64,000 nucleotides of DNA. Origin: Pavona decussata. Lineage: Eukaryota. Positions 2,991-63,897 of the stretch are shown here, one piece after another. The DNA is taken from the NCBI GenBank assembly GCA_977016875.1, contig CDRNST010000091.1:2108001-2172000 (forward strand), in the 5' to 3' direction. Within the stretch, counting starts at the first letter, position 1. Every line of letters starts with the position of its first letter. The notes beneath the pieces are model-generated. The model saw nothing but the letters and a program-made list of their open reading frames with translations, was not told the DNA's origin and made no database searches. Both the position numbers and the translations under genes were made by a program.

Positions 2991-3344
2991 TTCTCTGAGA
3001 AAATTGATACGACACAAGATGAAATCAGCAGGGTCCTTTTGGCGGAAGATGTCACCTCATCATCATCATTACTCCACCAACATCAAGAGCTGAGAAAAAG
3101 TGTCCTGGAATTATCAATGCAGACTTTATCCAAAGGACAGGCACTCCTAGACAGATTACGCGAGGCAAGCACACATGCAGACATAAACAACCAGCATGCG
3201 ACCAAAGTGGCATGTTACAGTGTTGAGCGTATTCTGGAAGCTTTGCATCATCGACGACAACAGCTTGATGAGCAATGGAGGGAGAGGAAAAAGGTTCTAG
3301 AACAGTGTATCAAGAGATGCAAGATTGATGAAGAAATACAAAAG
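2991..3344 (+). CDS. Exon 1 (in window), spectrin-like repeat
   Basis: gaacag|TTC...AAG|gtatgc; FSEKIDTTQDE...EQWRERKKVLEQC; 354 nt, phase 0-0. Confidence 0.9.
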
Positions 3345-15300: not shown

Positions 15301-18300
15301 AAGACCACAGAACCATGCTGGAGGCATCAATTGAATTCCATCAACTTTATGAACAGGTCTGCTTAAGATATTAACTTTACCTCAGCATACTGTTTTTTGT
15401 AGCCTACATTGCAAATTCATGTTTTGTGGATTCCTTGTTTGACAGTTTTCCCAGGGTAATTTGGACTGGAAAATATTTTGTACTCAGAGTCATCATAGTC
15501 AATCCAAAGATTCTCTGTTGTACTTCCTTGTTGTACTATAATTACTCACAAAGAGTGGGGAAGGTGCCGATGAGCGAGCACTTCCCTTGCACCAACTTGG
15601 CCTGGGTTTGATTGGCAGCACGTATGATAATTATGTGGATTGCGTTTCGTTTTGGTTCTCATCCTTACTTCCTGAGTTTTTTCTGTGACATTCTTCATTC
15701 CCACCACTTCACAAAAACAAACAAAACAAAGCAAACAATATTTCTTTAATTTTTAACAATTCAATCTGTGATCTGAGGGTTGTTGGTTAGTCAGTTGTCC
15801 AGGGACTCCCAGTTGGCTTGATAGTTCAGTTGGCAGAGCACTGCACCGGTATAGAAGAGGTCATGGGTTTGAATCCCATTCAAGCCTGAATTTTTTTTGC
15901 AACTACTTAAGTTGTGTTCATAACTACAATGGTCATTCACTTGTTCATTTTTTCCAAGGACTGTTACATTGTAATAATATTACTGTTACCCTAATGTGCC
16001 ATGCAAGTACCAGTAGTGCTTTCAACAGCCCAGGATTACTGTAAACAGTAACTTTTAACACAAAACTATGAATCCACTTAATCTGTTTTGTAGCTTGTCA
16101 CATTGTATAATGTGCAGGGTAATAAGTTCTCTCACATCAGGTTTATCTTCTTTCTTGCAGGCTTCAGTTTGGATCAGTGACAGTGAGCACTTTGTGAAAA
16201 CCACACGAGATGGAGCAAAGAGATGCAAAACTGAGGAAGAAGTTGTAGATCTTCTTGACATGTTGGAAGGCTTCGTAAAACCAGGCCTCAACAAGCAGGA
16301 AGCCCGACTAAAGAAACTGGCTGAACTCTCTGCTAAGCTCACTATGGATGAACCTCGTTACAAAGCCAAGGACCTCATGGCTAAACAGAAAGAAATTGCT
16401 ACCAAGTTTGATCTCATGGACAATGATCTTTTCCGTTTGGCAGAGAGACTCAGAGAAAGGAAACAAAGAGGGCTGCCTCCTAAGGTGAACATACTCAAGA
16501 CAAGTTATCATTCTAAGGCAGAGGTCAAAGACATAACTGTCATTTGCATGTTTTCACTGCTGTGAGCAAAATGTTGTAAAATTTCAGACTGAAAAGATCC
16601 ACGAAGCAAGGAAGGAGAATCTAAGAAAATTCTATCAGCATTCTTTCTTGACTTGAGTAGTCAACTTGAAACACTGGGAGTTGATTCCTAGGCTAAAAAT
16701 AATTAATGTTTAATCTATTTTCTATGAAATAATGGTTGACCCTTGGTTAGAGAAAGAGTCCTGAAAGCATGAAAGTTTTGAACAGCTTTTATTTATTTTT
16801 TGCGGGTGTTTTATTAACTTTCATGTAATCCTTGTTCTGTTAATTGGTTTCTCTTAGGCAGAGGAAGTTACATCAGAAAGCATTGAGGCTTATGAGAGAG
16901 AACTGTCAGAATCAGCTCCTGTCTCAGCAGAATATGGGAAACCAGTGCGGGTGAATGTCCTGTCATCTTTCATTGATGGTGTACTGGGTAGCAAGAGGCC
17001 AGGTGATCGAGAAGTGTTTGAAGAGGCCGGGCCAGCCAAACGTCCTCAGGTGTCTGTCAGAGTCAGGTCCGATACACCAGTAAGCTTAGAAACTGAACAG
17101 AAGATTGCACCCATCATCAAGTCAGAGATCCAGGGATGGTTTGAAGGTGGCAAAGCTGTAAAACCTGCTGAGATCCCAGAGCACGAAATTCTGGTTCACA
17201 TTAGTGAAGATACCAAGAGAGAACCCAGTGAAATGGCTTTGGCTCCTTGGGGTGCTGAAGTGGTGAAGAAAGATGTCACAGTCACCTCATTAGGGCCATT
17301 TGTTAGCAAAGACATTGAAGTTGAAACAGCTTTGCACACAGAAACACATCGGCCAACCTCGTCAGAGCAGGCTCAGCTTGTAAGGAAGAGGGTGTGGAAG
17401 ACAACGACAAGGGAAACCACCACCAGCATTAAGCAAGAGACAAGAACTGAAGTTGAGATGCTGGTTCCAGAAAAACCTGAAATGACATCAAATCTCTATG
17501 TTTTTGGTGCATTACCACCCTCTGAGAATCTGAATGTGGAGGTGAAGTCCAAGACATCTGTTGAGAGCACACCCGATACCATGGACAAGACAAGCCCCAA
17601 AGAAATCAGCAAAGTTGAAAGAGAAATGCAGACTGCCAATGAGAACATCTGCAGGAGGATTGAAGAGTCCGTGGCGAGTAGTCGTAGGCCGTAAGTACAC
17701 AACACCCTCTAAACGTTTTCCTAAAAAAAAAAAAACATTACCTGCTGTGGGTGTTTCTTAAATGCATGGTTTCGATTCTACACTTTCTAGACAACTTGTG
17801 ACTACAGGTACAATTAACCCTCGCTATAACAGACATCCAACGGACCACAACAGAGAAAGTCCATAAGAGCGGGAGGGTTTTTCAGTCATTCTTATTCCCT
17901 GAGACTTAAATGCTGTCCGTAATAGCTAAGAGTCCGCAAGGTAGGAGTTTACTGTATGTGTTAAAGTGGAAATATGGATGTCACTCCCTGAACTTATGCA
18001 CCAGTAGTTACAGTTTGTTTCCAATATTCTCATTCTGTTTACTTCATGCCGCAACTTTCGTTTTATTTCTTAGATTTGAACTAAAAAAACACGCTGAGAT
18101 TCTCATTCCCCAACATGCTGGTTCAGTTCTGATCTTCACTCCTCCTGGCACCCCGAGAAGAGACTCTGGCCCATGTATTGACTCAAGTCAGCTCACTAAT
18201 GGCCATGCGGGTGATGTAGACCAACCAAAAGTGGAATCTGAGGTGCATCTTATGAGGACGCCCCAGGACTTTGATTTTGGTGCAGTAGAGCTGACTATTC

Positions 18301-44318: not shown

Positions 44319-44356
<38 letters not shown>

Positions 44357-50300: not shown

Positions 50301-53300
50301 AATGAAGCCTGTTAATGTTACGGAAGGTGAACCAGCAACATTTTCAGTGAAAGTGACTGGCAATCCCCCTCCCATCATTGACTGGTTTCGGGGCAAGGAG
50401 CAATTGGAAGATGAGGGACGAATTGGAATGGAAGACAATGAAGAAACAGGGATCTACTCGCTCACCATTAAGGACACGGTCGTGGAGGATGCTGGCATGT
50501 ACAAATGTGTAGCAATCAATGAAGAGGGTGAGGTCTCTAGCAAGGCAGCTTTGGCTGTCAAAGAGCTCATCACCGAGCCCACATTTGAAACCCAGGAAGA
50601 TCAAAGACCTGAAGAAGCTACTCCAGTGAAAGTCGGAGAAGGTGATATTGTGAGTCTTAGTGCAGTTGTCAAAGGAAAACCTCTCCCTACTGTTGACTGG
50701 TACAAAAATGATGAGAAACTGCGAGAAACTAGCCGTTTGAAGATGGATGCCAAAGATGGTGAACTCTCTCTTATAATTTTGGAAGCGAAGCCTGATGACT
50801 CTGGCCTGTACAAGTGTGAAGCAAAGAACAAGGGTGGTAAAGCTGAGAAAACCTTTGACGTCAATGTGCAAGGTGCCTTAGAAATTAAGTTACGGTTTTT
50901 TAGTTTTCCAAAACATTGTGTAGCTGACTATTGTTTTAAAAAGTTCGGTTTGCAATTGTTTACGACTTTCACCAAAGTAGGTTGTTTACAACGAGAAACA
51001 AGCAATCAGTCTAACACACCCAGCCTCCTACCACCAACCAACCAACAGAACAATTAAGAACAACAGAAACTGGATAGTGAAGACTGAATATGCCGATATT
51101 ATTTTTAAGTGGTGTTACCAGCCAAAACAAACAAACAAACAAACAAACAAAAATAAAAATAAACGAACAAAATTTCATTTAGGTATTTTTTTTTTCTCTC
51201 TAACGCCTGAATGTAGAATCCGGTATATAAGAAACACGCATTAAGCTACTTATTTTGTTGTTTATATGTTGAAGGCCAAAAACCTGAAGGTTCTGCGCCA
51301 GTGTTCACAGAGTTACTGCAGCCAGTGGAAGTTGTGGAAGGTTCTCCAGCCAAACTTCAGTGCAGACTGAGTGGTGTACCAGAGCCAAGCATCGAGTGGT
51401 TTAAAGACAGCGAGCTTGTAAAGGAAGACAAGAGAACAAAGATCCGTTTAGACGGCGAGTTGTGCAGTTTGAAGATTCTCTCAACGGAGCTTGGAGATGA
51501 GGGTGCTTACAAGTGCGTTGCCAAGAATGAGTTTGGGTCTGCCTCCTGCGCTTCGGAACTCCTAGTTAACGAGGCAAACAAGAAGCCAGAGTTCATTGAA
51601 AAGATGAAGCCTGTGAATGTGACTGAAGGAGAGGCAGCCCGCTTTGATGTCCGAGTTGAAGGTAATCCACTTCCAGTTGTGGACTGGTTCAAAGGCAAAG
51701 ACAAGATTGAAGATGAAGGACGCTATGTGATGATGGACGATGAAGACGAAGGCAGGTTTACCTTGATTGTCGAGGAGACAATTCCTGTAGACGCAGGTAC
51801 CTACAAATGCGTTGCTACCAATGAAGAAGGGCAGACATCCACCAAGGCTGCTTTAGCAGTGAAAGAGAAAATGATTGAGCCTCAGTTTACGGACGGAGAA
51901 GAAAGTGCGCCCATAAATGTGACAGATGGTGATGAGATAAGCTTAACTGTAAACGTCAAAGGGAAACCAGATCCTACTGTTGAGTGGTACAAAGATGACA
52001 AGAAGCTGAGGAAAACTAGCAGGGTGAAGATAGATGCAATTGGCGATAAGTTTTCACTGGTTATTTTGGATGTCACACCCGAAGATTCTGGCAAGTACAA
52101 ATGCGAAGCTTCCAGCAAGGCTGGCACTGCAACTCGCATGTTTGATGTAAACGTAGCAGGTATGGAGTTGGTGTTCACTTAGGCGATTTATAACTCTAGC
52201 ATAAAGAGGGTTTATAAGAACTTCGATTAAACAAAGCGGTCACATTGGAACAATCAAAACACACTGCAGAACTCTTTAACTAGAGCATAACCTTGATTAC
52301 ATGTTTTTTTTCTTCATAACTAACTGAAAAAGGAGTGTCTCGATCTTCGATTGATTAGGACATGTTGAATTCATTTTTGAGACAATTTTAAAACATAAAG
52401 AATTACTTACTCCAGGCAACGAAAAAACCGCTCAAGTTAGCAAGCTGTTTGATGGTTGAGTTGTTTTAACTAAGGAATCGCGAGGTTTTGTTGCGGAAAC
52501 TGGATCAGGAAGAAGCTTGTTCCAGACCAATGTATAGTGAATTTGATTTTTAGAGTTAATATCATATCTTGGTTTAGTTTGCCGTTTGTTCTTGTTCTAT
52601 TTCGAGGCTTTTACTTTGGTTCTAGAATATCAGCTGACAATTTTGTAATTTGTAAAACTGCCAGGTGTTATTCTTAGATGCTGGCCAATGTTTTTTTATT
52701 TGTGCAGCTAAGAGTCCAGAGGGCAAAGCACCAGAAGTAATCAGGCCTGCAGCGATTGTTGAAGTTGAAGAAGGCAAACCAGCTAGGATAGAATGCCAGA
52801 TAAGTGGGCAGCCCACACCAAATGTTGAATGGTTTAAGGACAGCGAGAAAGTGAAGGAGACGAAGCGCATCAAACCTGAAAGTGACAACGAAATATTCTC
52901 TTTGAATTTTAAGGAGACTGAACTTGACGATGAAGGTGACTACAAGTGCGTTGCTCGTAATGAGTTTGGCAGTGTGTCAACCGAAGCTGAATTGCTTGTC
53001 AACGAGGCTGGTAGCAAACCCGAGTTCGTGGAGAAAATGAAGAACGTCAACGTTCAGGCTGGAAAAGAGGCCAGGTTTGATGTGCGTGTTTCTGGGTCCC
53101 CACCGCCAGAAGTTGACTGGCTGAAAGGAGATGAAAAGATCGAAGATGATGGCCGGTTTGTCATTGTTGATGGTGAGGCCGATGGGCTTTTCTCATTGAT
53201 TATTGAGGAGGTAAAACCAGAAGATGCTGGAAAGTATGAGTGTATTGCATTCAGTGAACTGGGCGAAGCCTCTTCCAAGGCTAACCTGGCTGTGGAAGAA

Positions 53301-56300
53301 GTCCTTGTTGCTCCTGAGTTTGCTGTAGAGGCTGAGAGTGCTCCAGTCGTAGCTGAAGAAGGAGGGGATGTAACATTGGATGTTGAGTTGAAGAAAGCGC
53401 ACCCAGATCCCCAAGTAGAGTGGTTTAAGGATGACAAACCAGTTAAGGTAGATGATCATTTGGCTTTGGCTGACAAAGATGATTTGCATTCGCTGTCAAT
53501 AACAGGAGCCACCCCTGAAGATTCTGGTTTGTACATGTATAAAGCTAGCAGCAAAGCTGGTTCCATAGAGAGGACCTTTGATGTGCAGATTACAGGTATT
53601 GTTTACTTGAAGTAGCACATCCTAATAAATAATAATAAACTTTATGAACGTGCTGAAGTCATAGAGGTTTACTTGTCGGGGACGCATGTTACATTCTGAT
53701 ATGCTGAAGTACGTTCTTACAGTGTATGTTACAGATAGTATGAGTGCATAACGATGTGTTTACTTGCTTAGTTACGATGAAATGCAAATGAGTTAGTTAA
53801 AAAACAATTGTGGCAGTAGCCAATATCAGAACATGTCTATACGTTAATTGCAAGGTTTGAGATAATTACCTTTGCAAACATCGTCCTTGGTTAGGTCTTT
53901 TTGATAAATGTTGTCTTTAATGGCGTCTGTCAGAGATTGATTATTTTTCTCACCATGGGTGCATTTAAATCAGAAGCGCGGTCCAAGGGACCGTAATGAG
54001 TGTTTCCATACCTGACAGTGTCCAATCCACGATGGCCTTTGTAAATTTTATTGCCTTTTGGTGAGTGTTTTTGCTTTTTACCTTGCAGCAAAGCAACCGG
54101 AAGGTACAGCCCCTCAGTTCACAGAAACTTTACAACCAGTGGAGGTAAAGGAGGGAAGTGCAGCCAAACTCCAGTGCACAGTGACAGCTGAGCCACAAGC
54201 AGTTATTGAATGGTTCAAAGATGGAGCAAAAGTGAAGGAGAGCAGACGGGTGAAAGCAGAAAGAGATGGAACATCTGTTTGTTTGTCTTTCAAGGAGACT
54301 TTGCCTGGTGACAATGCTGAGTATAAGTGTGTGGCTACAAACGATATTGGGTCTGCCTCTTGTTCCACTCATTTAACGGTCAAGGTTTTATCTAAACCGG
54401 ACTTCAAGGACAAAATGAAAGCGGTTGAAGCAGTTGAGGGTGATTCGGCCACTTTCGACGTCCGTGTGGCTGGTTATCCTGAACCCACCGTAGAGTGGTT
54501 TAGAGGAACAACAAAACTGCAGAATGATGGGCGCTTTGAGATCAAGGAAATCAAAGAGGAAAATCGGTTCACTCTTGTAATCGGAGACGTTAAACGTGAC
54601 GATACTGGAATGTATAAATGTGTGGCGTCAAACGAAGTTGGCAAGAACACGTGCCGAGCTGACCTCAATGTGAAGGAGAGGCTGTTTGCCCCTGTATTCT
54701 CTGAGGAGCAGTCAGATGCCCCCATTACTGCGACAGTAGGCGATGAGGTGAGCCTGGATGTTACGGTCAATGGAAAACCCAAACCTGATGTTAAATGGTA
54801 CAAGGATGACAGACCACTGCGTGAGAGCAACAGGCTGGACATCAAGGCGCGAGGAGACAAATACTCTGTGGTGATTCTCGGGATCAAACCAGACGATTCT
54901 GGAGTGTACAAGTGTGAAGCAAAGAGCAAGATGGGTACTGTGACCAGGACATTTAATGTCAGAGTAGCAGGTATTTACAAATTAGTTTTCCTCCTCGTTT
55001 TAGAGTTCGAGGAAAACTGTTTTTCTCCCTTTGGCCAACATCTGTCCCTCTGTTTCATAAATGCAGTAGCCTTTAAATCATTGTGGTAATCGCACTGTTC
55101 TTTCTCTCTTTGGATTGTGTAAACAGGAAACCATCACAGTTTATGTGACGCAACGAGGAAATGTCTTATGGATGAAGGACTCTCGCTTAAATTCATCCCC
55201 AACGGAATATGAATCTTAGTATTATTCACTCAGCTGCGAGGGGCTGTCATGACAAGCCATTTTATTCTTAGTTCTTATGTATTATGGTGGTTTCTATGGT
55301 GTACCATCTCCGCCAAAAAACTAAATTGTCACCCAACATTCAGCTTAAGAGATCAACATCAGACTTTATGATGTCAACGTTGATCCCCAAGTAAATCAAG
55401 TTCCAACTTTGCAACATAACGTCCGACAACAGGAATCAACTTTCAACTTAAAAATGTGTCCTTAGAGTTTATGCGTAAATTACCGAGTTCACGAGTTTCC
55501 AACATCGGACTTTATTTTGATGTCGAAATTAGCACGGCACATTCCGACAGGAAATAGCACGGAGTGACAGGCCTGTTCGACCTCTAACAATGTAAACATT
55601 TTTGAAATGTATCCTCTTTATAGTTTTGCTCTGACAAGCACGTGTTCAGAGATTTTCCTTTTTTAAAGGAGATCAGTGGTGACTCTTTGAAGATTTCTCG
55701 TAGGAAAGGCTGGTTTTGTATTAAGTGCCATTTTTCCATCAAAACATGTTTGAGGTTGGGTGCTGATGGTTAATATTGTGTCAAGAAAGACAATGTTTGG
55801 GGGTGGTGTTGTTGGTTTTTTTTTTTTTTACTTTAATGCTCATGACCTTTCTGAAAATTTGACATCTGATAAAAATTTTTCAATCAGTTTCTTTGGGTAG
55901 CCTATAGCAAAGAGACGTCATTTAATTTTTTTTAATGTTTTCCACAAATGTTCTTTGTGAGAAGTTGCTCGTACAAATCTTAGGGCTTCGCCCTTAACGA
56001 TTTTTTTGGCTCCTTTTGGGTGGCTAGAGGAATCAAACAGCTCGTGAATGAAAAGATATTTCGGATTTCGTTTAAAGTTATTTGCTTAACGCGCAAAACA
56101 ATTTAACTTCGCTCTTGACTATTCCTTTCGACACGCGAGGCAACGCAGAGGTGGAACGTCACGCGACAAAACATGGTGACTCAAAAAAATGCGTTTCCAG
56201 GTTTTTTTCGAAAGGCTTCGCAATTGTCTGCGTGACCATGGGATTATCAAGAGACCTGGTATTATTTGGCCTTGCCCTCCTTGTATTTTATCTTGTTAAT

Positions 56301-59300
56301 CCATGACAACAAGTGTGCTTGCTTTGTCCGCTTTTTTAAGGGTTAAGTAATTGCGTCGTTTGATAGCGTTTAATGTTCGACGTTCTTTGCGTGACAAGTT
56401 TGGTTTTGGATTGGCTATTTGTATCTCCGCAATTTGTTTTTTGACCTCTTCAAGAGATGTTTCTATAGACAGTGTGACTGATGGTTGAATTAGTGGATCC
56501 CAGTTTGGTTTGATATACACTGTAGAAGGGATGAATTGTTTATTTTGCCCGTGGAAGATGTATCTGAGGCACATTCGTCTTGCAAAATGTCTGAAATTCT
56601 GCAAGAGTTTGTGTCGGACTTATTTTTGTCTCCATAACGAATGAATGTAATTCAACGTGTGAGGTCCCCAACACTTCTCGCCGGCCTGTAGGTGCCACGT
56701 GCAGCAAGCTGCAAAGAGCTATGACGAGAGCGAGGCAGTGCTACAGAATGATGTCATTTATCATATCCTATAATTACTGGCGGATTTAGGACGCAACTTT
56801 GAACTTTTTGATGTGACGACAACGTCGGACTTGAGCTAGAAAAATCCAAAAATTGCTTTACAGTTTGTCGGGATGTGCCGCCTAATTTCGACATCAAAAT
56901 AAAGTTCGATGTTAGCGCGTATTCCTTAAAAACCTTTGAAGTTGGTTTGTATCGGTATGTTGTCGAAACCCATGCACATTGTAAAGGTGAAAGTTGATTC
57001 ATGTTGTCGGACGTAGTTGGATATTGATTTACATTGCTTGGTGATGGTGGTCGTTGCTTGATCCTTGTTAGCCTGCAGTGTAAAAGCTAATAACTTCTTT
57101 TCTTTATTCCAAATTTCTCTTTACAGCCAAAAAACCTACAGGAACAGCACCAGAAATCACAAAACCTCTGGAAAATGTCACCGTTGTTGAGGGTGAACCA
57201 GCAACCCTTGAGTGCGAGCTGAAGGGAGAACCACAGCCCAACATTGAATGGTTCAGAGATAGTGAGCAGGTCAAGGAGTCCAAGCGCATTAGTCTGCAAT
57301 TCGATGGCAAGCTTTGTTCTTTGTCTTTAAAACCGAGTGAGCTTGATGATGAAGGAGAGTACAAGTGTGTTGCACGTAACGAACTCGGAAGTGCGTCGAG
57401 CACAGCGGAACTACTTGTGAATGAAAGCAACAGGAAACCAGAATTTGTAGAGAAGCTTAAAAACATCAGTGTTCAGCCTGGAGAGGAAGCGAGGTTCAAT
57501 GTGCGGGTTATTGGCTCACCACCGCCAGAAGTTGATTGGTTCAAAGGAAAAGAAAGCCTTGAAGATGAGGGTCGCTTTCTTATGGTGGATGATGTAGAGG
57601 AAGACCTGTTTTCGTTGATTATTGAAGATGCCCAACCAAGTGACAGTGGTGAGTATGAGTGCGTTGCATTCAATGAAGTTGGCGAAGTCTCATGCAAGGG
57701 AAACCTGGTTGTTGAGGAAACTCTCGTTGCACCCCAAGTTATCGATGAAGTAGAAGGTGCGGCACCCATGCTTGAAGAAGCAATCATGGCACCCAAGTTT
57801 GCTGAAGAAGGGGAAAGTGCACCAGTTGTGATCGAAGAAGGAGGTGATCTCAGTTTAAGTGCAGATGTCAAGGGACGGCCAACACCAGATGTTCAATGGT
57901 CGAAGGATGGTCAGGACTTAAAGAGCAGTGAACACTTGGATGTTGGTGAGGAGGATGGCAAACACACACTGTTGGTCAAAGGCGCTACTCCTGAAGACTC
58001 TGGGGTTTACAAGTGTCAGGCTACCAGCAAGGGAGGTGTGGCTGAAAGAACGTTTGACGTACAAGTGATAGGTACCTTTATGTTTTGTTGTTTGAAGTTC
58101 GATAGCGTACAAATGTCGCAACGTTTCTAAACTTACCACTAAGGAAAACAGTATTGGTGGGTAGAATGCGTAGTAGTTTTCACCCGAATTACCAAACGTT
58201 ATGATTTCACAGGCTCAAGAACAACTTCTACATTCACTGACACTCTGGTACCACCGTGTACCGGAAAATAGACAGTACAACAGAATAGCACTCATTTTAA
58301 ATGCCCACACACTTGAGGGATTTTTACAGGGTCAGAGATACGCCTGTGGAATTTGCAGTAATTGAGTCTGGCGTCTTCCCTTCCCCTATGCATCAACCGT
58401 AAGTAGGAATAAGTCAAGCGAAGGTAGTCAAGGTACTTTTAGTAATGGTTAATTTTCATGCCTGGTTTTAAAACTGCAGCTAAGAAACCAGAAGGGACAG
58501 AGCCAGTATTCACAGAACCTGTTCAACCAGTCGAGGTCAAGGAAGGCAGTGATGCCAGACTACAATGCACTGTCGAAGCGGAACCCAAACCCAATGTTGA
58601 ATGGTTGAAGAATGGCGTTCGCGTGAAAGAAAACCGACGGGTGAAAGTAGAAATTGACGGGAAAGCAACTTCACTGACGATCAAAGAAACCAGGACGCCG
58701 GACCAAGGAGAATACAAATGTGTAGCGACAAATGTTGTAGGGTCATCGTCCTGTGCTGCCACCTTAACAGTCAAGGCCATTACCAAGCCAGACTTCAAAG
58801 AGAAGATCAAGACAAGTGAGGTTATGGAGGGAGACACTGCGAGGTTTGATGCTCGAGTGACTGGGTATCCTGTGCCCGAGGTGGAGTGGTTTAGAGCAAC
58901 AACCAAGCTGAAAAATGATGACAGGATTGAAGTGACACAGGACAAAGATGACGATGTTTACTCACTTGTAATCAGTGACGCTAAGCGGGAAGATGCTGGA
59001 ATGTACAAATGCGTGGCTTCAAATGAAGGAGGTAACTGACGCAATATTACGTTACAGTCACCCTACGTCACGCGTGACCAGTATTTCCGAGAGTGAAATG
59101 AACATACGAATTCCTCTTTGTTAATGTCCGGCATTTGAATGGAATATTGAAAATTTCTTTGGAAATCATTCCGAAAAAGACGCGTTAAGTGGAAAAAAAT
59201 TTAAAATATTCGGTAAACATTTGTGCTTAATACTGTGATGATAAAATGAAAGAATGAAAAAAATCATAGCTTTATACGGTCAATAAACAAGGGAACTTTC

Positions 59301-62300
59301 TACGTGAACTCTGAAATCTCGCTGGCGATGTTCAAAACTGACATATAAATTTCAAAACTTTGTCACGCGTGACGTAGGTTCACTGTACCACTTTCGCTTC
59401 TTATCGGATGCTAACAGAACTTAAAGAGTAAGCAATTGTCAAACGTTTGATGGAAGCGAAATACATGTATTTGCTGGTCTTTTGACTTACACAATGTTCG
59501 AAGCTATCGAAACTCAGTTGGCATGGTATTAGATTACGCACAAATCCTCTGTTGGCGTCAGACGAGAGGCCATCGTATTAACAAGCTGTTAGACTGTTTT
59601 CAGTCCCCTGTGTTTTTATGTGATTTTCTAGATAGTATATGTTTTCCATTGGACTGCAATCATCTTGGTTTGTTGGGGACAGTGTAACCTGGGGAGAGGG
59701 CCAGAACTACCAAGGGGGCCCCTAGTCAGGTTGCTTAGCGTGGCGGAGGAGGGGAGACAACTAAAATATCTCTCTCCCCACGTCGAGCCCTCTTTGGCGC
59801 GCTCCCCAAGTTGCGCTCGTCAGGATGGCGGCAGTGCGATCGAAGCATACTACTACTACACTGTAAACAGCCCAACAAGCTGTTTTCTATTGTGTTTCTA
59901 GGTAGGCAAAATCTCCATTGCTGTTAACCCTTTCTGTTGTAGGTAAAAACACATGCCGAGCTGACCTCACCGTGAAGGAGAGGCTGTTTGCCCCTGAATT
60001 CGCTGAGGAGCAGTCGGATGCCCCCATAACAGTGTCAGAAGGTGGAGAAGTCAGCCTGGATTTAACAGTCAATGGTAAACCCAAACCTGATGTGAAATGG
60101 TACAAGGATGACAGACCACTGCGTGAGAGTAACAGGCTGGACATCAAGGCGCGAGGAGACAAGTACTCTGTGGTGATTCTCGGGATCAAACCAGACGATT
60201 CTGGAGTGTACAAGTGTGAAGCAAAGAGCAAGATGGGTACCGTGACCAGGACATTTGATGTCAGAGTAGCAGGTATTTACAAAGTTGTTCCGTAATCTGT
60301 GACTACACGGCTGGTAACAGTTACAAAACAGCATTTCCTTCGTTTCGTCTTAAAGTTCTAATGGTCTTGTTTGAAATGACCATCGCCGTGTTCATGCACA
60401 CGTCCTACAGTTTTAGTCTCCATTGTTGTATTCACATTTTACCAAGGTCATTCTTAATTAACTAGAGAGACTTGATATCTCCAACCCAAGATGCCGGATA
60501 CTCATACATGTAATACTGTCAACTCCCATTGACTGTTATTCTCACATACTTGCAGAAGATTGAAACCAGAAGCATACCAAGTTTTAGTTGGAAAGGACAA
60601 TTTTTCAAAATACTCTTCTTTTACTGAGTTGAGGATTTTATTCACTGACTCGACTTGCGACTTCCATTTTTTGAGTCAAGATTTTTTTCTTCTTATTAAT
60701 ATTATTCTTTATTTACGCACAGATTCTAATTGACAAAATGTTGAACTTACTTAACCTCAAACACCTGTGCAATTCATCGTCCTTAATAAGATTTCAAAAA
60801 CGGAGGGGGAGAGTTGGAGCGGGGGTGGGGTGGTACTTTTTTTTTTGGGAGTGAAAATTGTAAGTCCCGTAATTCTATGCGTGACTGTTGTATTTCTCAT
60901 TTCATTTCTTAGCTGAGAAGCCAGCTGGAACGGCACCACAGTTTACGCAGCCTTTAGAATCAATGGAAGTCTCAGAAGGGACAACTGTTAAACTCACATG
61001 CAGCTTGAAAGGAGTACCTCAACCAACTATTCAATGGCTCAAAGATGGAAAGCCCCTGAAAACTAGCATAAGGGTGAAGGACGAGTTTGATGGGGACGTC
61101 GCCGCTTTGGTGTTTTCCGAAGTAGAGCTTGACGATGAAGGTGATTACAAGTGCGTTGCGCAAAATGAGTTGGGTTCTGCATCTTGTACTGCGGAGCTTC
61201 TTGTGAACGAAGCTGGTGTGAAGCCTGAATTCACTGAACCAATGAAAGACATTGAGGTAGCTGTTGACGACGAAGGAAGGTTTGATGTGCGCGTATCTGG
61301 CGTGCCTAAGCCATCGGTGCAGTGGTTCAAGGGAACAAAGAAGATCGAAGATGAAGGCAAGTTCTTGTTGATGGACGATGAAGAAGAAGAAGACCTGTTT
61401 TCTCTTGTCATTGACCAAGTTGCCTCTGATGATGTCGGCACGTACACTTGCAAAGCGGCTAATGAATCTGGGGAGGTGAGCTGCAAAGCTGAACTACAAA
61501 TGCAAGAGAAGATGGCAGCTCCTGAATTTGCTGATCAAGAGGAAAGCGGCCCGATCACTGCTCAAGAAGGAGACGACGTAACCCTTAATGTTACTGTGAA
61601 AGGAAAGCCAAGCCCACAGATCGAGTGGCACAAGGACGATAAGCGTCTGAGGAAGACCAGCCGTCTGGATGTCAAAGAACGGGGAGATAAGTTCTCTTTG
61701 GTTATCTTAAAGGTGACACCTGACGATTCTGGTTTGTACAAGTGTGTGGCAAGTAGTAAGGCTGGAAGTGTTACAAGAACATTTGAAGTCAACATTGAAG
61801 GTATGTCCCAAAGGGTCATCAACCCATGCAATTTGTGATGCGATCTTAAGGACGGTTTTTAAGCACTATTCACAATCATTTCACTCTGACTTTGAAAGGC
61901 TGTGTAGTGGAAGAATGTTGCTTGGTATGTGAAGAAAAAGTGAACATGTCGGAAGACAATTGTGTGCACTCCGCTGCACTTAAGTCTTAAATTTTTCCAA
62001 AAACTATATATTCATACAACCATTGTATGTCCTTTTGATACTGCTTCCTTCTAGAGAGAGTGGAAAGTTCCCTTTGAAAGGTTGCTCCAGCTACTGTTCT
62101 TTAACACTTTTTGTTTGTGGGTTTTTTTGCGGGGGGTAGGGAGGGGGATATATTGTCAAACCTGTTGGATAAGTAATTACCGTGTAGAAAGAAAATTTTG
62201 CGGGAGTTTTATTTTGCGGATTGGCGAGTTTTTGTGGTTTGCGGGAACAAATATTTGCGGTTCGCGATGACTAAAAGTTTTGCTGGGAATTAATTTTTGC

Positions 62301-63897
62301 GATGCTCTGTTCAAATAGCAGAGCATTTAAGTGGAAGAAACCTTAATATTTTTAACTTTTATTGTACGGTATGTTGAGTCACAGTTCACTCTACTTACAT
62401 ATTAGAGACATATCACTGGAGTACCTTACTGCGTAAAGGGACTGAACAACATCAAAACAAAACAAAAAGCCTATCTGGCCTAAGATGCACAACCGTATGA
62501 ATGTTCGAATTACCGTAGCTGAAACCTTTCTAGGCATACAGAGGGGCTTTCGAGTGAAAGATGTAGCAAGTATACAACTTTGAGACCTAACTGGGAGAGG
62601 TCTGCTAAAATGCAAAACTTTGCCCTACAGTAACACAATGAGGCAGACTCAGCCGATGATATAAACACTCTTGTTCAGTTAGTTTCAAGTGTTGAAATAA
62701 CTTCTGTGCAGGCCGCTGCAGAAGCGCCAATAGAGCATGGTTGGTCTGTTTATAAGTCCAATGTATATCGCCCCAGTGGCGCAGATCTATTAAAAGTGGA
62801 GTTTTTAATTTGACTAGAGGGAGTTAATTTTTGCGGCGTTTTATTTTGCCGGTGTTTATTTCTGCGGGAACTAATTTTTGCGGATCGGGGTCAATCCGCA
62901 AAATCCGCAAAAATTATAACTTGCAAAATTTTCATGCTACACGGTACCAGCAATGTTATCAACCACCACTTGGGAGTAATAATATTTGTAAAATTTCTTT
63001 AAGGTAAAAAAGCAAAAAAACCCAAAGGAAAAGCACCAGAATTTACACAACCTTTGAAAGCAGTACAAGTTGTAGAGGGCAATCCTGTCAGGCTAAAATG
63101 CCGCATGGTGGGCACACCTTTACCTACTGCCGAATGGTTCAAGAACGGAACTGAAGTCAAACTTAGCAGTAGAATCAAAGCTGGCATCATTGGCGACATG
63201 TGTCAACTGTCTTTCACTGAGACACAAGTGGATGACAGTGGAGATTACAAATGCGTGGTTCGCAATGAAGTCGGATCAGCGTCTACCGAAGGTGAACTCA
63301 CTGTCACTAAGCCTGTCTCGGCACCTGAATTTAAGTTGAAACTGAAAAATGTTAAAGCAAGTGAGGGAGAACAGGCTCAGTTTGATGTGAAGGCGGCTGG
63401 AAATCCTGAGCCAAACATTGAGTGGTTCCGTGGAACTCAAGCGATCAGCAACGAAGGACGTTTTACGTTGAAATCTGGTGAAGCGGACGAACAGTACTCT
63501 TTAGTCATCGATGATACAATTCTAGACGATGCAGGTACTTATAAATGCGTTGCGTCTAACTCGGCAGGAAAAGCAACTTGTCGGGGAGAACTTGAAGTCA
63601 GCGGAAAACTTACGGCTCCAGAATTTGTCGACGAGCTGGATGAAGCTCCAATAACTGTTACAGAGGGCGAGGAAGTGTCTTTGCCTGTTACCATTCGTGG
63701 AAAACCAGCTCCGGATGTTGAGTGGTACAAAGATGAACTTAGTGTTAGAAAGTCATCAACTATTACCACGTTTGTAAAAGGAGATCAATACACATTGTAC
63801 ATTTACAGCGCTAAGCCTGCTGATTCCGGTGTGTACAAGTGTGTGGCGAAGAGTAAAATGGGCACAGCAACACGGACGTTTAACATCAAAATAGAAG
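2991..63897 (+). CDS. Giant spectrin-repeat / DH(RhoGEF-like) / SH3 / 60x I-set Ig protein (Trio/Kalirin-like head, titin/UNC-89/obscurin-like tail); partial at both ends, 47 exons, ~7,900 aa in window
   Basis: All exons are GT-AG with consistent phases. The summed length is 23,695 nt in one open frame. Motifs: spectrin-type helices with W, DH (LIESEEKYLDDL...IFVNSEDIFFFH...RPVERVLEY), SH3 (ALQDF...WVPSSVL) and I-set Ig (P.F...G.P.P.V.W.K....D.G.Y.C.A.N..G). Confidence 0.93.
4076..4195 (+). CDS. Exon 2, spectrin repeat first half
   Basis: cacag|ATC...AAG|gtagat; ITKWLNEDAEDYL...YGDSAASTQVLLDEHAKFE; 120 nt. Confidence 0.9.
4216..4449. mobile_element. MITE with (G)GCCCCAGTTGTTCAAA termini, probably Harbinger-type
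   Basis: ctggccccagttgttcaaa ... ttttaacaactgggaccag inverted ends; internal tggata/tatcca palindromes. Confidence 0.7.
4471..4627. mobile_element. Degenerate Tc1/mariner-type MITE
   Basis: cagtggaac...gctccactg|ta termini. Confidence 0.6.
5281..5472 (+). CDS. Exon 3, spectrin repeat second half (not in ORF track)
   Basis: ttag|GAA...CGA|gtaagt; EKEEAGHRLARETEKLVHGDF...VDERKKLLLETLAYY; 192 nt. Confidence 0.9.
6594..6848 (+). CDS. Exon 4, spectrin-like
   Basis: ttgcag|GCT...GAT|gtaaga; 255 nt, phase 0-0. Confidence 0.85.
7063..7185 (+). CDS. Exon 5, spectrin repeat first half
   Basis: ctgcag|GTG...GAG|gtaaga; VYNWIKNVGDDFL...MGDSVKTSQEFLYLH; 123 nt. Confidence 0.9.
7471..7787. mobile_element. 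Harbinger-like MITE with ~45-bp TIRs
   Basis: gctgttacactgggcaatttttcttgcaacttgtc matches the reverse complement at 7743-7787; taa left flank, ttt(a) right flank. Confidence 0.8.
8712..8882 (+). CDS. Exon 6, spectrin repeat second half
   Basis: ttgcag|CAT...CTG|gtgagt; DLWSIFTARLEYRLTLGKMYFDFH; 171 nt. Confidence 0.9.
8982..9120. mobile_element. Short hairpin MITE
   Basis: gggtgcatggaataaggccctcagtgactt ... aagtcacttggggcttttatacaggcaccc. Confidence 0.65.
9552..9725 (+). CDS. Exon 7, spectrin-like (not in ORF track)
   Basis: ctacag|CTT...AAA|gtaagt; LFGKLDELTNQL...SQALLDELRK; 174 nt. Confidence 0.88.
9807..10044. mobile_element. Harbinger-like MITE
   Basis: agggtgctctccatttgtcagaa ... ttctagcaaatgtaaaagcactct with TA-rich flanks. 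Confidence 0.65.
10551..10730 (+). CDS. Exon 8, spectrin-like
   Basis: ttccaag|GAA...GAG|gtgagt; LGQLWTLREEQL...FVQFEKDTRE; 180 nt. Confidence 0.88.
11043..11165 (+). CDS. Exon 9, spectrin repeat first half (not in ORF track)
   Basis: gtcag|GTC...AGG|gtaagt; VILWIKEQSDTFF...LRRFKDAAR; 123 nt. Confidence 0.88.
11261..12028. mobile_element. Non-autonomous TTAA-targeting DNA transposon (Kolobok-like)
   Basis: ttaa|GGTGGCCGAACACAGTTT ... AAACTGTATTCGGCCACC|ataa. Confidence 0.8.
12842..13033 (+). CDS. Exon 10, spectrin repeat second half
   Basis: cctcag|CGC...AAG|gtgagt; 192 nt. Confidence 0.9.
13477..13803 (+). CDS. Exon 11, spectrin repeat
   Basis: tcgcag|CTT...ACG|gtaggt; EWRSLWEHHKDKLEESVRLCEFE; 327 nt. 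Confidence 0.9.
14201..14323 (+). CDS. Exon 12, spectrin repeat first half (not in ORF track)
   Basis: ttgtag|GTC...AAG|gtagga; VNLTIEEHTRELL...FGVTLLDAVTLLQESDAFLESVK; 123 nt. Confidence 0.88.
15165..15356 (+). CDS. Exon 13, spectrin repeat second half
   Basis: tcacag|CCT...CAG|gtctgc; MESRWQRFLSRMEDHRTMLEASIEFH; 192 nt. Confidence 0.9.
15806..15950 (+). mobile_element. tRNA-derived SINE, copy 1
   Basis: ggcttgatagttcagttggcagagcactgcaccggtat...gggtttgaatcccattcaagcc (degenerate A/B boxes) with a tail shared with the 20409 copy. Confidence 0.8.
16161..16484 (+). CDS. Exon 14, last spectrin-like repeat
   Basis: ttgcag|GCT...AAG|gtgaac; 324 nt. Confidence 0.9.
16858..17690 (+). CDS. Exon 15, E/T/S/V/P/K-rich low-complexity linker
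   Basis: cttag|GCA...CC|gtaagt; 833 nt, phase 0-2. Confidence 0.87.
17811..17954. mobile_element. Degenerate Tc1/mariner-type MITE
   Basis: ta|caattaaccctcgctataac ... gagtttactg|ta. Confidence 0.55.
18074..18431 (+). CDS. Exon 16, linker plus first helix of DH domain
   Basis: ttag|A TTT...GAG|gtatgg; QRMNDITGKLIESEEKYLDDLRSLVE; phase 2-0. Confidence 0.88.
18904..19001 (+). CDS. Exon 17, DH domain
   Basis: tgcag|GAT...AAA GT|gtatgt; DYIYQL...IFVNSEDIFFFHK; phase 0-2. Confidence 0.85.
19201..19430 (+). mobile_element. Old SINE remnant
   Basis: degenerate tRNA-like head gggagc...gcagtgagagtact and tail ttcctccataaaaacaaacatt; recognised by eye only. Confidence 0.4.
19493..19562 (+). CDS. 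Exon 18, DH domain (not in ORF track)
   Basis: ttacag|T ATC...AGG|gtaaga; IFYDELSKCRGIPSDVGQVFTKR; phase 2-0. Confidence 0.85.
20409..20560 (+). mobile_element. tRNA-derived SINE, copy 2
   Basis: ctcccagttggcttgatagc...agaggtcatgggtttgaatcctgttcaagcctgaattt, homologous to 15806. Confidence 0.8.
20761..20850 (+). CDS. Exon 19, DH domain (not in ORF track)
   Basis: ctaaaag|GAA...AAG|gtaaga; ENELDRYITFCDGKSDSANFIESHPKDFFK. Confidence 0.85.
21373..21513 (+). CDS. Exon 20, DH domain CR3 (not in ORF track)
   Basis: ctgtag|AAC...GAG|gtactg; PIEELLDRPVERVLEYRAYLTDLLQCARKAGVDTHDLE. Confidence 0.87.
22113..22481. mobile_element. TA-flanked MITE containing a nested Penelope-type palindromic fragment (22281-22400)
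   Basis: ta|ctgtaaa ... actacgg|ta; internal tttttggaagg repeats; gacgttgcgagcattagcc...gtcaga / ctctgac...ctcgaaacatcagc. Confidence 0.55.
22603..22655 (+). CDS. Exon 21, last DH helix (not in ORF track)
   Basis: long (ttct)n tract, tttcag|GCT...CA|gtaagt; AGKEVVDRLWAEITQQT; phase 0-2, needed for frame. Confidence 0.82.
23714..24372 (+). CDS. Exon 22, SH3 domain plus Ig 1
   Basis: tttcag|G TTT...GAA T|gtaagg; ELCVALQDF...VLVLDR...EVWVPSSVL, then APVFIVPLE...AELNVE; phase 2-1. Confidence 0.9.
24621..24970 (+). mobile_element. 5'-truncated Penelope-like retroelement 3' end
   Basis: encodes KLNKQCDSIHAKLFV*, like the end of GIY-YIG PLE ORFs; followed by cttgaaaatGACCGTcggACGGTCgaaacgtcg. Confidence 0.65.
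25023..25080 (+). CDS. Exon 23, 58-nt linker exon (not in ORF track)
   Basis: tttcag|CT...AT|gtaaga; SVESEGEPEVEEPQITVIK; phase 1-2, required to join exons 22 and 24. Confidence 0.85.
25465..29858 (+). CDS. Exon 24, 4,394-nt giant exon with 14 tandem I-set Ig domains
   Basis: ttgcag|A GCC...AGA G|gtaaga; ORF 25394-29875. Confidence 0.95.
31831..33849 (+). CDS. Exon 25, six Ig domains (A-B-C-C-C-C)
   Basis: gcatag|CT...GAA G|gtagct; 2,019 nt, phase 1-1. Confidence 0.93.
34190..35065 (+). CDS. Exon 26, three-Ig unit
   Basis: tcacag|GT...AAA G|gtaact; 876 nt. Confidence 0.92.
35385..35500 (+). mobile_element. Degenerate tRNA-derived SINE (second family)
   Basis: gtagctcagaggttagatcatctgactggt...ggaggtcatctgtttgactgctg. 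Confidence 0.5.
35570..36092 (+). mobile_element. 5'-truncated CR1-type LINE 3' end with poly(A) tail
   Basis: encodes GRTRLSNPYNLKTPVCKTSTFQASYFNRIVKLWN (CR1 ORF2 C-terminal SfFnR...lWN motif); AATAAA at 36042 and A-rich tail at 36055-36092. Confidence 0.75.
36647..37549 (+). CDS. Exon 27, three-Ig unit
   Basis: ttttag|AC...GAG G|gtgagt; 903 nt. Confidence 0.92.
37650..38800. repeat. ~100-bp degenerate tandem repeat, interrupted by a transposon
   Basis: recurring accttgtacagc-aataaacagc-ccacaggaaagtactg-ctttcatt-aatggtcacactttaggatttc-acagactcaaaa; related fragment at ~48340-48420. Confidence 0.75.
38058..38732. mobile_element. Kolobok-like non-autonomous transposon with ~125-bp TIRs and TTAA TSD
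   Basis: ttaa|GGTTACCCAGTACCTTCAGAGGTGTCTCGCG ... CACCTCTGAAGGTACCGGGTGGCC|ttaa; 12-bp duplication in the right TIR. Confidence 0.9.
39132..39431 (+). CDS. Exon 28, single Ig
   Basis: tcacag|CC...ACA G|gtatgg; 300 nt. Confidence 0.92.
39929..40116 (+). CDS. Exon 29, PEVK-like spacer
   Basis: ttatag|AA...CAG|gtattt; EEEQLKPAEEEVVVE...KEIPESKPTFDEVQ; phase 1-0. Confidence 0.85.
40526..40907 (+). CDS. Exon 30, spacer plus single Ig
   Basis: ttatag|CTT...GAG G|gtatgt; phase 0-1. Confidence 0.9.
41144..41338. mobile_element. Harbinger-like MITE with CAG TSD
   Basis: cag|GGTCCAGTTGTTCGAAAGCC ... GGCTTTGAACAACTGAGCC|cag. Confidence 0.8.
41475..41525 (+). CDS. Exon 31, candidate 51-nt symmetric microexon (ELTRSRGSGVDITIVPS)
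   Basis: tgacag|AA...TCT G|gtaaca; open, phase 1-1; weak pyrimidine tract; optional for frame. Confidence 0.5.
41988..42296 (+). CDS. Exon 32, single Ig
   Basis: ttacag|AA...GAA G|gtgtgt; 309 nt. Confidence 0.9.
42517..42883. mobile_element. Kolobok-like MITE with TTAA TSD
   Basis: ttaa|AGGGGCATTGACAC ... GTGACACTGCCCCT|ttaa. Confidence 0.85.
43069..43093 (+). CDS. Exon 33, 25-nt frame-bridging microexon (EPSDDEKV)
   Basis: ttcacag|AA...AT|gtgagt; phase 1-2, matching the phase-2 acceptor at 43747. Confidence 0.8.
43494..43714. mobile_element. Degenerate Harbinger-like MITE
   Basis: taa|ggcctgcttacac ... tgtaaacgcccc|ttta. Confidence 0.5.
43747..44030 (+). CDS. Exon 34, single Ig
   Basis: tatcag|A CTA...GAA G|gtactg; phase 2-1. 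Confidence 0.9.
44051..44430. mobile_element. Kolobok-like MITE with TTAA TSD
   Basis: ttaa|GGACGGTGCC ... GGCACCATCC|ttaa. Confidence 0.85.
44995..45233. mobile_element. Harbinger-like MITE with CAG TSD; same family as 41144-41338, opposite orientation
   Basis: cag|GGCCCAGTTGTTCAAAGCCC ... GGCTTTCGAACAACCCGGCC|cag. Confidence 0.82.
45424..45462 (+). CDS. Exon 35, 39-nt symmetric acidic microexon (DKPEEEETDSGTN)
   Basis: ttacag|AT...AAC G|gtaata; phase 1-1. Confidence 0.72.
46340..46962 (+). CDS. Exon 36, Ig A+B and start of C
   Basis: aatcag|AT...GAG|gtttgt; phase 1-0. Confidence 0.9.
47223..47475 (+). CDS. Exon 37, remainder of Ig C
   Basis: tatcag|GTG...GAA G|gtaagt; phase 0-1. Confidence 0.9.
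47619..48261. mobile_element. Kolobok-like non-autonomous transposon with TTAA TSD
   Basis: ttaa|GGTGATTCCA ... TGGAATCACC|ttaa. Confidence 0.85.
48493..49167 (+). CDS. Exon 38, two Ig domains (B-C)
   Basis: acatag|GG...CAA G|gtatga; 675 nt. Confidence 0.9.
49198..49465. mobile_element. MITE fragment (ta-ccgt terminus, ataagccc repeats)
   Basis: taccgtgaaaatccgaata; repeated ataagc(c/t) motifs; only one end visible. Confidence 0.4.
49973..50872 (+). CDS. Exon 39, three-Ig unit
   Basis: acacag|AA...CAA G|gtgcct; 900 nt. Confidence 0.9.
51275..52159 (+). CDS. Exon 40, three-Ig unit
   Basis: ttgaag|GC...GCA G|gtatgg; 885 nt. Confidence 0.9.
52708..53595 (+). CDS. Exon 41, three-Ig unit (acidic type)
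   Basis: gtgcag|CT...ACA G|gtattg; 888 nt. Confidence 0.92.
54089..54970 (+). CDS. Exon 42, three-Ig unit (basic type)
   Basis: ttgcag|CA...GCA G|gtattt; 882 nt. Confidence 0.92.
55391..57030. mobile_element. Foldback element with ~160-bp imperfect inverted arms (55391-55549 / 56866-57030)
   Basis: aacatcggactttattttgatgtcgaaattag and acgtccgacaacaggaatcaactttca recur as reverse complements. Confidence 0.75.
55560..56700 (-). mobile_element. Decayed, internally deleted Penelope-like retroelement
   Basis: ORF 56296-56604 NLSRKERRTLNAIKRR...KKADKASTLVVMD (pre-RT region); downstream minus-strand remnants VKGEALRFVR and PNLKHVLMEKWHLIQNQPFLREIFKESPLISFKKGKSL; RT core missing. Confidence 0.75.
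57127..58071 (+). CDS. Exon 43, three-Ig unit (acidic type) with duplicated linker
   Basis: ttacag|CC...ATA G|gtacct; 945 nt. Confidence 0.92.
58480..59031 (+). CDS. Exon 44, first part of a split three-Ig unit (basic type)
   Basis: ctgcag|CT...GGA G|gtaact; 552 nt. Confidence 0.88.
59055..59385. mobile_element. Tc1/mariner-type MITE with TA TSD
   Basis: ta|CAGTCACCCTACGTCACGCGTGAC ... GTCACGCGTGACGTAGGTTCACTG|ta. Confidence 0.85.
59590..59874. mobile_element. MITE with 9-bp TSD (MULE-like)
   Basis: acaagctgt|TAGACTGTTTTCAGT ... ACTGTAAACAGCCCA|acaagctgt. Confidence 0.75.
59943..60272 (+). CDS. Exon 45, second part of the split three-Ig unit
   Basis: ttgtag|GT AAA AAC...GCA G|gtattt; 330 nt; 552+330=882, the length of paralogous exon 42. 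Confidence 0.9.
60913..61800 (+). CDS. Exon 46, three-Ig unit (acidic type)
   Basis: tcttag|CT...GAA G|gtatgt; 888 nt. Confidence 0.92.
62180..62944. mobile_element. TA-flanked non-autonomous DNA transposon
   Basis: ta|CCGTGTAGAAAGAAAATTTTGC ... GCAAAATTTTCATGCTACACGG|ta; subterminal ttttgcgg repeats. Confidence 0.85.
63004..63897 (+). CDS. Exon 47, three-Ig unit (basic type); gene continues beyond window
   Basis: tttaag|GT...GAA G|gttagt; 894 nt. Confidence 0.9.

Follow-up and report, generated by a model that had tools for sequence, protein, structure and literature searches.

Connectitin and Its Relatives

Hanashima et al. (2025, J Mol Evol, PMC12198301) propose that SESTD1, CCDC141, and titin were once a single gene, connectitin, itself a paralogue of TRIO/KALRN. 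They report connectitin to be present in cnidarians and placozoans, i.e., in Aurelia, Hydra, Acropora millepora, Nematostella, and Trichoplax (with accessions XP_044172413.1 and XP_029213098.1 for A. millepora and XP_048579265.1 for N. vectensis). Its domains are described there as a Sec14, more than ten spectrin repeats, many Ig domains, RhoGEF/PH/SH3 modules and, in the coral and the sea anemone, three kinases. In trees of Sec14 and of kinase domains connectitin is sister to Trio/Kalirin rather than within it, a placement which for A. millepora is taken from the text of that paper (PMC12198301).

Titin has been thought to be absent from cnidarians, and a double origin of striated muscle has been argued for on that ground (2017 review, PMC5253434). 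The same review describes cnidarian orthologues of obscurin/UNC-89 as broadly expressed rather than muscle-only (PMC5253434). We infer that those orthologues are the same gene as the locus that is described here.

The Locus as a Probable Coral Connectitin

The window, that is, the whole 64,000-nt stretch of Pavona decussata DNA that was analysed, represents, with considerable confidence, the middle portion of the connectitin orthologue of this coral, which is one very large cytoplasmic scaffold gene. The assembly comprises 602 Mb in 1180 contigs, the window lies on contig C91 at 2108001–2172000, 200 kb of flanks were taken in, and the window itself is free of any N run. Part of it is represented in coral metatranscriptome runs. 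Coordinates are given throughout relative to the window, with negative values lying upstream of it.

The locus was modelled whole, in a splice-aware manner, as about 126 exons that span some 165 kb and encode ~12,800 aa. The model was trained on Ig codons, reproduces seven of seven RNA-supported exons and, after one local correction, yields a single stop-free chain. In the N-terminal part of the modelled protein are found, in order, a Sec14, ~12 spectrin repeats (SESTD1-like and then CCDC141-like), a linker, a first DH domain (DH1) without a PH, and an SH3. There follows in the middle a main array, in which ~77 I-set Ig domains are separated by short PEVK-like linkers. The C-terminal part then consists of SH3, SH3, DH2, PH, SH3, Ig, Ig, kinase A1, Ig, kinase A2, and kinase B. 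As modelled, the modules follow the order of Trio/Kalirin, except that an Ig array of titin/obscurin type stands between the first GEF-SH3 and the second GEF modules and that there are extra kinases.

An initial annotation, made from the letters of the window, had placed both gene ends outside of it, and domains are indeed found upstream as well as downstream on the same strand. The positions by which that annotation had delimited its parts (2991, 16484, 25465, and 63897) are all exon ends in the splice-aware model. Against its estimate of more than 7,900 aa, about 7,700–7,800 aa are found here within the window. Its derivation of the gene from a Trio paralogue gains support from a Kalirin-like Sec14, from SESTD1-/CCDC141-type spectrin, and from a DH and an SH3 that are spliced to the I-set array. 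The annotation had pointed as well to a possible match with a connected ancestral gene of SESTD1, CCDC141, and titin, and had doubted its own novelty for that reason. Such a gene exists in print, as connectitin (Hanashima et al. 2025, PMC12198301), and the doubt was justified, connectitin having been published for corals and sea anemones in that year. This Pavona decussata locus accordingly corroborates what has been published and is no new discovery.

Of the features by which connectitin may be recognized, Sec14, Ig, RhoGEF/PH/SH3, and three kinases (A1, A2, and B) are found at this locus, which differs from those published in coming from another assembly and probably from another coral species. 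The DNA described here is another connectitin member, one that adds an exon-level map and transcript evidence and leaves the published picture unchanged. Particularly, what is additional relative to Hanashima et al. 2025, as compared apart from Figure 7 of that paper, is the exon anatomy, the splicing of DH1 to SH3 and Ig as seen in a contig, and the location of a PH-less DH1 between spectrin and Ig.

The gene is like vertebrate titin, SESTD1, and CCDC141, and like CG15822, Zormin, and Sallimus of Drosophila, in its Sec14-spectrin, its combination of spectrin and Ig, its long Ig array, its PEVK-like linkers, and its MLCK-type kinase. It is unlike them in that what are three separate genes in those animals are, as modelled, fused parts of one coral gene. 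It is unlike titin, too, in having no Fn3, in having DH and SH3 modules, in having three kinases, and in having a three-Ig repeat unit. That is, the Ig-Fn3 super-repeats, the long PEVK region, and the one kinase near the C-terminus by which a titin/connectin would be identified are not what is seen here.

The Sec14-Spectrin Head

Upstream of the window, four collinear exon pieces have the Kalirin Sec14 structure 7ur2 as their best or sole match. These are −24941..−24717 (E 0.061), −19890..−19801 (E 5e-5), −19429..−19298 (E 0.002), and −18893..−18732 (E 8e-4), which cover residues 49–93, 99–121, 124–151, and 159–193 of that structure, respectively. Pfam CRAL_TRIO_2 reaches E 0.065 at best over this part. 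An upstream Sec14, which the initial annotation had proposed looking for, is thereby found. SESTD1-like spectrin exons (Spectrin_SESTD1, E 1e-9) follow, likewise upstream of the window.

Within the window, 14 phase-0 exons on the + strand, at 2991–16484, encode 880 aa of spectrin-type repeats that are stop-free and bounded by canonical splice sites in the splice-aware model, given one hand correction. The first five of these exons are found at 2991–3344, 4076–4195, 5281–5472, 6594–6848, and 7063–7185, the next five at 8712–8882, 9552–9725, 10551–10730, 11043–11165, and 12842–13033, and the last four at 13585–13803, 14201–14323, 15165–15254, and 16161–16484. A 7-nt exon with a split stop, at 8876–8882, was an artefact of the model and has been replaced by the exon at 8712–8882.

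Pfam recognizes both ends of this head. At 2940–3350, i.e., over the first exon, DUF7799 is matched at E 3.4e-12, over its cut-off, along with Spectrin_7 and Spectrin_SESTD1, and at 16059–16562, over the last exon, Spectrin is matched at E 3.6e-6. In the Atlas this exon falls nearest to clusters of SESTD1-like and Kalirin-like spectrin, and DUF7799 is carried there by CCDC141 clusters, which serves as a lead only. The first exon starts at an acceptor site and has no start codon of its own within its open frame. Together with two weaker matches upstream of the window, these and the Spectrin_SESTD1 match noted above bring Pfam support for spectrin across the locus, in single-exon searches, to five exons.

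The 12 exons between the first and the last give no exon-level Pfam match. Sizes of 123 nt and 192 nt recur among them, and 123 plus 192 nt corresponds to 105 aa, which is one repeat. Because one such repeat is split over two exons, single exons escape the Spectrin profile. A helix-A tryptophan pattern is present as well, as judged by eye, and it is by exon periodicity and by eye that these middle exons may be described as spectrin-like.

From Spectrin Repeats to Ig Domains

The last spectrin repeat is followed, ahead of the DH, by a linker exon (16858..17690, +) of 277 aa, acidic and Ser/Thr-rich, which matches no Pfam family. In other corals it is conserved as an open frame, at 30–66% identity, inclusive of a Thr-rich basic motif, and an exhaustive profile search using 16858–17691 returned pieces of open frames that are short and in all likelihood come from other corals, without any full-length model. 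Between the spectrin repeats and the DH1 of Trio there is nothing that obviously corresponds to this linker.

The first DH (RhoGEF) domain spans 18074..22655 (+) and is made up of six exons, at 18074–18431, 18904–19001, 19493–19562, 20761–20850, 21373–21513, and 22603–22655. The initial annotation had named a DH domain here, and this is borne out by collinear RhoGEF profile fragments (positions 5–24 and 120–170) on the first and the fifth of these exons and by the best solved matches of the fifth, which are the DH domains of ARHGEF25 (p63RhoGEF), Trio, and Kalirin, at E 4e-4 to 7e-3. When the RNA-supported exons are joined, a DH-sized stretch of ~185 aa results, as judged by eye and from the two profile fragments. 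No PH domain follows, the RNA-supported frame going straight into the SH3. By eye, DH1 (within 18345–23950) appears to have a lysine in place of the conserved acidic residue at the start of its first helix, and DH2, at ~85.36 kb, keeps the usual acidic motif. Going by these residues, DH1 may be catalytically impaired.

The next exon (23714..24372, +) holds a divergent SH3 (~23740–23950), a Pro/Glu-rich linker, and Ig1 (24102–24368; Pfam I-set, E 4.5e-26), and is conserved at 72–91% in other corals. The SH3, which had also been proposed by the initial annotation, is probable, the evidence being weak but concordant. That is, the profile SH3_KALRN is matched at E 0.057, the top solved structure is the Kalirin SH3 1wfw at a non-significant E of 0.31, and all ten of the ten best named Atlas clusters are SH3. 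AlphaFold gives a pLDDT of 49 for the piece alone and of 56, as an all-beta model, upon inclusion of 12 coral orthologues. With Foldseek, nearly all of the top 50 weak rows for that latter model are SH3, all at E>0.4.

That these exons are joined is seen from the contigs of four public runs, which were aligned to 18000–23999, with RNA continuity covering that stretch. Contig X1-1 (run X1; 6,825 nt) skips six GT..AG introns, and covers all six DH1 exons as well as 23714 onward. Contigs from runs X5 and X7 show the same joints, such that the joint of 22655 to 23714 is found in three runs. The RNA nature of the runs is a guess, but as introns are missing from the contigs, these derive from RNA. 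The joined frame is open, without a stop, through an unstructured lead-in, the DH, the SH3, the Pro/Glu-rich linker, and Ig1.

Further reach of these contigs is a matter of arithmetic rather than of alignment. Contig X1-1 extends 876 nt upstream of 18074, a length that fits the 833-nt linker plus the end of exon 16161–16484, and contig X5-4 extends 1206 nt upstream of the same point, which is long enough to include that spectrin exon. Downstream, X1-1 extends about 4.85 kb past 23999, i.e., into or through the giant Ig exon described below. As the spliced contig joins linker, DH, SH3, and Ig exons, head and tail form one transcript. The single unbroken spliced frame that had initially been claimed for 2991–63897 has RNA joints from 18074 to beyond 23999 and is otherwise a same-strand model. 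Included in the latter is a putative exon of 58 nt (25023..25080, +), present in the model only, without which the Ig1 exon and the giant exon would not be in frame with each other.

Introns in this part of the window carry tRNA-like elements and a repeat. A tRNA-like element at 15815–15887 scores 47.7 bits with Rfam tRNA and is read by ARAGORN as tRNA-Thr GGT. Another, at 20418–20494 (34.7 bits with Rfam tRNA), lies in a bin of very high contig depth in four of four runs and could be either a SINE head or an expressed tRNA. An intronic repeat at 22800–23400 shows extreme contig depth in every run, with many loose ends, and probably represents a transposable element of high copy number whose transcription occurs elsewhere. 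Two interspersed repeats are found toward the ends of the window, each with at least 40 scored copies in the genome, these being one of ~390 bp at 1038–1432 (copies at 83–94% identity) and one of ~447 bp at 62500–62947 (89–99%).

The Ig Array

On the + strand of the window, over 24102–63893, an iterated profile search whose seed was a single domain of a 1493-aa open frame identifies 60 I-set domains, at domain E values of 1e-19 to 1e-34. The same search finds zero I-set domains on the − strand of the window. Sixty is exactly the number that the initial annotation had counted, and Pfam I-set is matched on every large frame tested. With 20 more downstream, all on the + strand as well, the locus has 80 Ig domains in total.

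The 1493-aa frame belongs to a giant exon (25465..29858, +), which comprises Ig2 to Ig15 and short Pro/Glu/Val/Lys-rich linkers. Pfam delimits 14 I-set stretches in it, which are the same 14 domains as given by the iterated profile, and its best solved match is titin I65–I70, at E 3e-91. Open frames of the same size are present in other coral assemblies, at 46–96% identity to this exon, and its best named non-coral relatives, which are 22–30% identical to it, comprise unc-89-like, hemicentin-like, titin-like, and obscurin-like proteins. What word-indexed protein searches recover are genomic open frames that are read through introns, and hence indicate exon conservation rather than junctions.

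Exons carrying Ig16 to Ig36 follow at 31831..49167 (+), mostly of phase 1-1 and with a few non-Ig inserts, e.g., at 39929–40349. Over Ig37 to Ig60 (49973..63897, +) there are typically three Ig domains per exon of ~880–945 nt, and this super-repeat continues past the end of the window. A three-domain periodicity is evident also from identity among domains, which is 0.42–0.48 at lags of 3, 6, 9, and 12 versus 0.31–0.32 at other lags, and the three-Ig exons, spanning 49.9 to 66.9 kb, match those lags. As the Ig domains are 30–65% identical to one another, the array is old and is not an assembly artefact.

Two departures from this regularity may be mentioned. Ig48 (54709–54966) and Ig54 (60008–60268) are 93% identical, versus 55–65% for their neighbours, which points to gene conversion in recent times, or else to part of the three-Ig super-repeat having been duplicated. 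Ig53, unlike what is found with other three-Ig exons, is split by an intron (exons 58480–59031 and 59943–60272).

The B-strand cysteine is kept in 26% of the Ig domains and the F-strand cysteine in 89%. Judged from sequence, this pattern is that of intracellular muscle-type I-set domains. Linkers between Ig domains are short and PEVK-like, at 32–98 aa, and the longest PEVK-like linkers are found between Ig domains just past the end of the window (72592–78325), where they are of 50–69 aa, consist to 58–68% of Pro, Glu, Val, and Lys, and show Pro-Lys repeats. No Fn3 was matched in any scanned frame of the window or its flanks, and there is thus no A-band type super-repeat.

The Downstream GEF Module and Kinases

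Past the window the main array runs on for another 17 Ig domains, to 82.9 kb, with three further Ig domains at 98, 106, and 123.6 kb. All of what follows is on the + strand. Two SH3 domains lie downstream of the array, at 83.6 and 84.4 kb, followed by DH2 at ~85.36 kb, the start of which is matched at E 0.0035 and which has, by eye, the usual acidic motif in its first helix, and then by a PH (SOS1_NGEF_PH, E 1.4e-8). A third downstream SH3, at 95.8 kb, is followed by two Ig domains.

Three kinases complete the gene, the first at 108.9–111.2 kb over several exons, the second at 124.0–124.8 kb, and the third at 131.3–135.1 kb, again over several exons. The second is complete (E 1.7e-74), shares its exon with an Ig, and is nearest to MYLK4, twitchin, DAPK, and titin kinases. 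When compared by eye with the supplementary alignment of PMC12198301, kinases 1, 2, and 3 share distinctive motifs with the Am_CON_A1, A2, and B rows, respectively, and not with Am_TRIO. Of the Fn3 and kinase domains that the initial annotation had suggested seeking downstream, kinases are thus present, three of them, and Fn3 is absent from the frames scanned.

Open frames flank the locus on both sides, one of 911 aa at −32983..−30251 (+), without a Pfam match, and one of 1131 aa at 178070–181462 (−). These may represent a transposon or neighbouring genes.

One Transcript or Several

The Sec14/SESTD1-like part, the window, and the kinase part have been joined by a model that was forced to a single chain. 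The locus might instead consist of overlapping transcription units rather than encode an obligatory protein of 12,800 aa, an arrangement which is compatible with there being one gene and which we view as a serious if less favoured possibility. The products in that case would be a SESTD1-like one (Sec14 plus the first spectrin repeats), a CCDC141-DH-Ig one, and an obscurin-like Ig-GEF-kinase one, as may be compared with the isoforms of Kalirin/Trio and with the later bilaterian split.

Pertinent to such an arrangement is the ratio of observed to expected CpG, which is 0.45–0.62 over the Sec14 exons (−24 to −16 kb), ~1.0 from −16 to −4 kb, and ~0.3 from −4 to +20 kb, and which then climbs slowly to ~0.9 by 70 kb. 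This looks like two successive gene-body methylation domains, and the drop from ~1.0 to ~0.3 near −4 kb, which speaks for overlapping units, could mark an internal promoter. Long introns are found, too, on both sides of the exon at −2678..−2487. In KALRN, furthermore, three internal promoters match the starts of SESTD1, CCDC141, and titin, and the A. millepora kinase B comes from a different accession than A1 and A2 (both as given in PMC12198301), so that the one-gene model is not uniform even in that coral.

Running counter to separate units, the pattern of phase-0 spectrin exons of 123 nt and 192 nt is unbroken across the supposed boundary, the exon at 2991–3344 begins at an acceptor and is without a start codon of its own, and a contig joins the linker, DH1, SH3, and Ig. 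In Nematostella all three kinases are in one accession (PMC12198301). A single connectitin gene remains the reading that is preferred here.

A more specific proposition goes further, and we would consider it rather unlikely. It is that the full, collinear Trio module order has been kept, with the Ig array between GEF1-SH3 and GEF2, and that the CpG reset near the junction of SESTD1-like and CCDC141-like parts is an internal promoter.

Other Readings of the Locus

A quite improbable reading is that solely the Ig/GEF/kinase part is one gene, that is, an obscurin/UNC-89 orthologue in keeping with the cnidarian naming of 2012, with the spectrin/DH head being a separate gene upstream. The C-terminal two thirds does have the obscurin/UNC-89 layout, i.e., a long I-set array, then SH3-DH-PH, Ig, and paired kinases, and outside of corals the giant Ig exon has unc-89-like, obscurin-like, and titin-like proteins among its best named relatives. 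Obscurin/UNC-89 orthologues have also been reported in Hydra, Clytia, and Nematostella (PMC5253434). The coral gene, however, has three kinases, and its DH1 exons are spliced in three runs to an exon in which SH3 and Ig1 stand together. Contigs X1-1 and X5-4, furthermore, reach far enough upstream of 18074, by length, to include the spectrin exon at 16161–16484. The spliced contig joining DH1, SH3, and Ig likewise argues against the separation of head and tail into two genes, which the initial annotation had named as the outcome that would overturn its claim. To our knowledge, obscurin/UNC-89 has neither a Sec14-spectrin head nor an N-terminal DH-SH3 module. Here a DH-SH3 and a linker are spliced onto the array from upstream, with a Sec14-spectrin head preceding it on the same strand, which is not the makeup of obscurin/UNC-89.

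Less credible still is that the locus is simply the ordinary Trio/Kalirin orthologue of this coral. Module order is shared, i.e., Sec14, spectrin, GEF1, SH3, GEF2-PH, SH3, Ig, and kinase, and the best solved matches of the Sec14, DH, and SH3 pieces are Kalirin or Trio structures. But Trio has one Ig and one kinase versus ~80 and three here, and it has DH1-PH1 and DH2-PH2 tandems, whereas the coral gene lacks the first PH. The coral gene differs as well in having ~77 Ig domains between its first SH3 and GEF2, in having two SH3 domains before DH2, and in having spectrin repeats of the SESTD1 and CCDC141 types, and its kinase motifs fit Am_CON rows and not Am_TRIO. A. millepora has a separate Trio gene, according to PMC12198301. 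Genome-wide family searches with RhoGEF, CRAL_TRIO_2, SH3_KALRN, and Spectrin_6 identified no Trio paralogue in this assembly, and the same searches missed the present locus. A CRAL_TRIO_2 locus on contig C36 showed no similarity to the gene model.

That the Ig array belongs to an extracellular adhesion or matrix protein (hemicentin-/DSCAM-like), misjoined by modelling or misassembly, can be dismissed with scarcely any reservation, for although hemicentin-like proteins, contactin, Robo, and DSCAM are among the weaker matches of the Ig exon, and although the runs that hold 97% of sampled words are perhaps the assembly's own source and hence not independent support, the Ig array is connected by RNA to DH and SH3, titin is what it matches best among solved structures, about three quarters of the Ig domains lack the canonical disulfide pair, and no other extracellular modules occur in the frames scanned.

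Possible Function and Significance

By analogy with known giant proteins, the product of this connectitin gene may serve as a filament or ruler. The Ig array would then be an extensible or spacing filament, as in the titin I-band and in obscurin/UNC-89, which the Sec14-spectrin head might anchor to membrane or cytoskeleton. Within epitheliomuscular cells the second GEF module could provide for local Rho signalling, and the kinases, which are of MLCK/twitchin type, could provide for signalling that is linked to stretch or to Ca-calmodulin.

For the family as a whole, the fused Sec14-spectrin-GEF-Ig-kinase gene that is modelled in this coral lends support to the idea, put forward in 2025, that one Trio-like paralogue gave rise to titin, obscurin, SESTD1, and CCDC141, and the locus adds, in another coral, transcript-level support for the join of head to tail along with a detailed exon map. 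Should the CpG reset indeed be an internal promoter, then the promoters along which the gene later split in bilaterians, into SESTD1, CCDC141, and titin/obscurin, would already have been present inside one ancestral gene, and this locus would represent a living system in which such a promoter-guided split could be tested.
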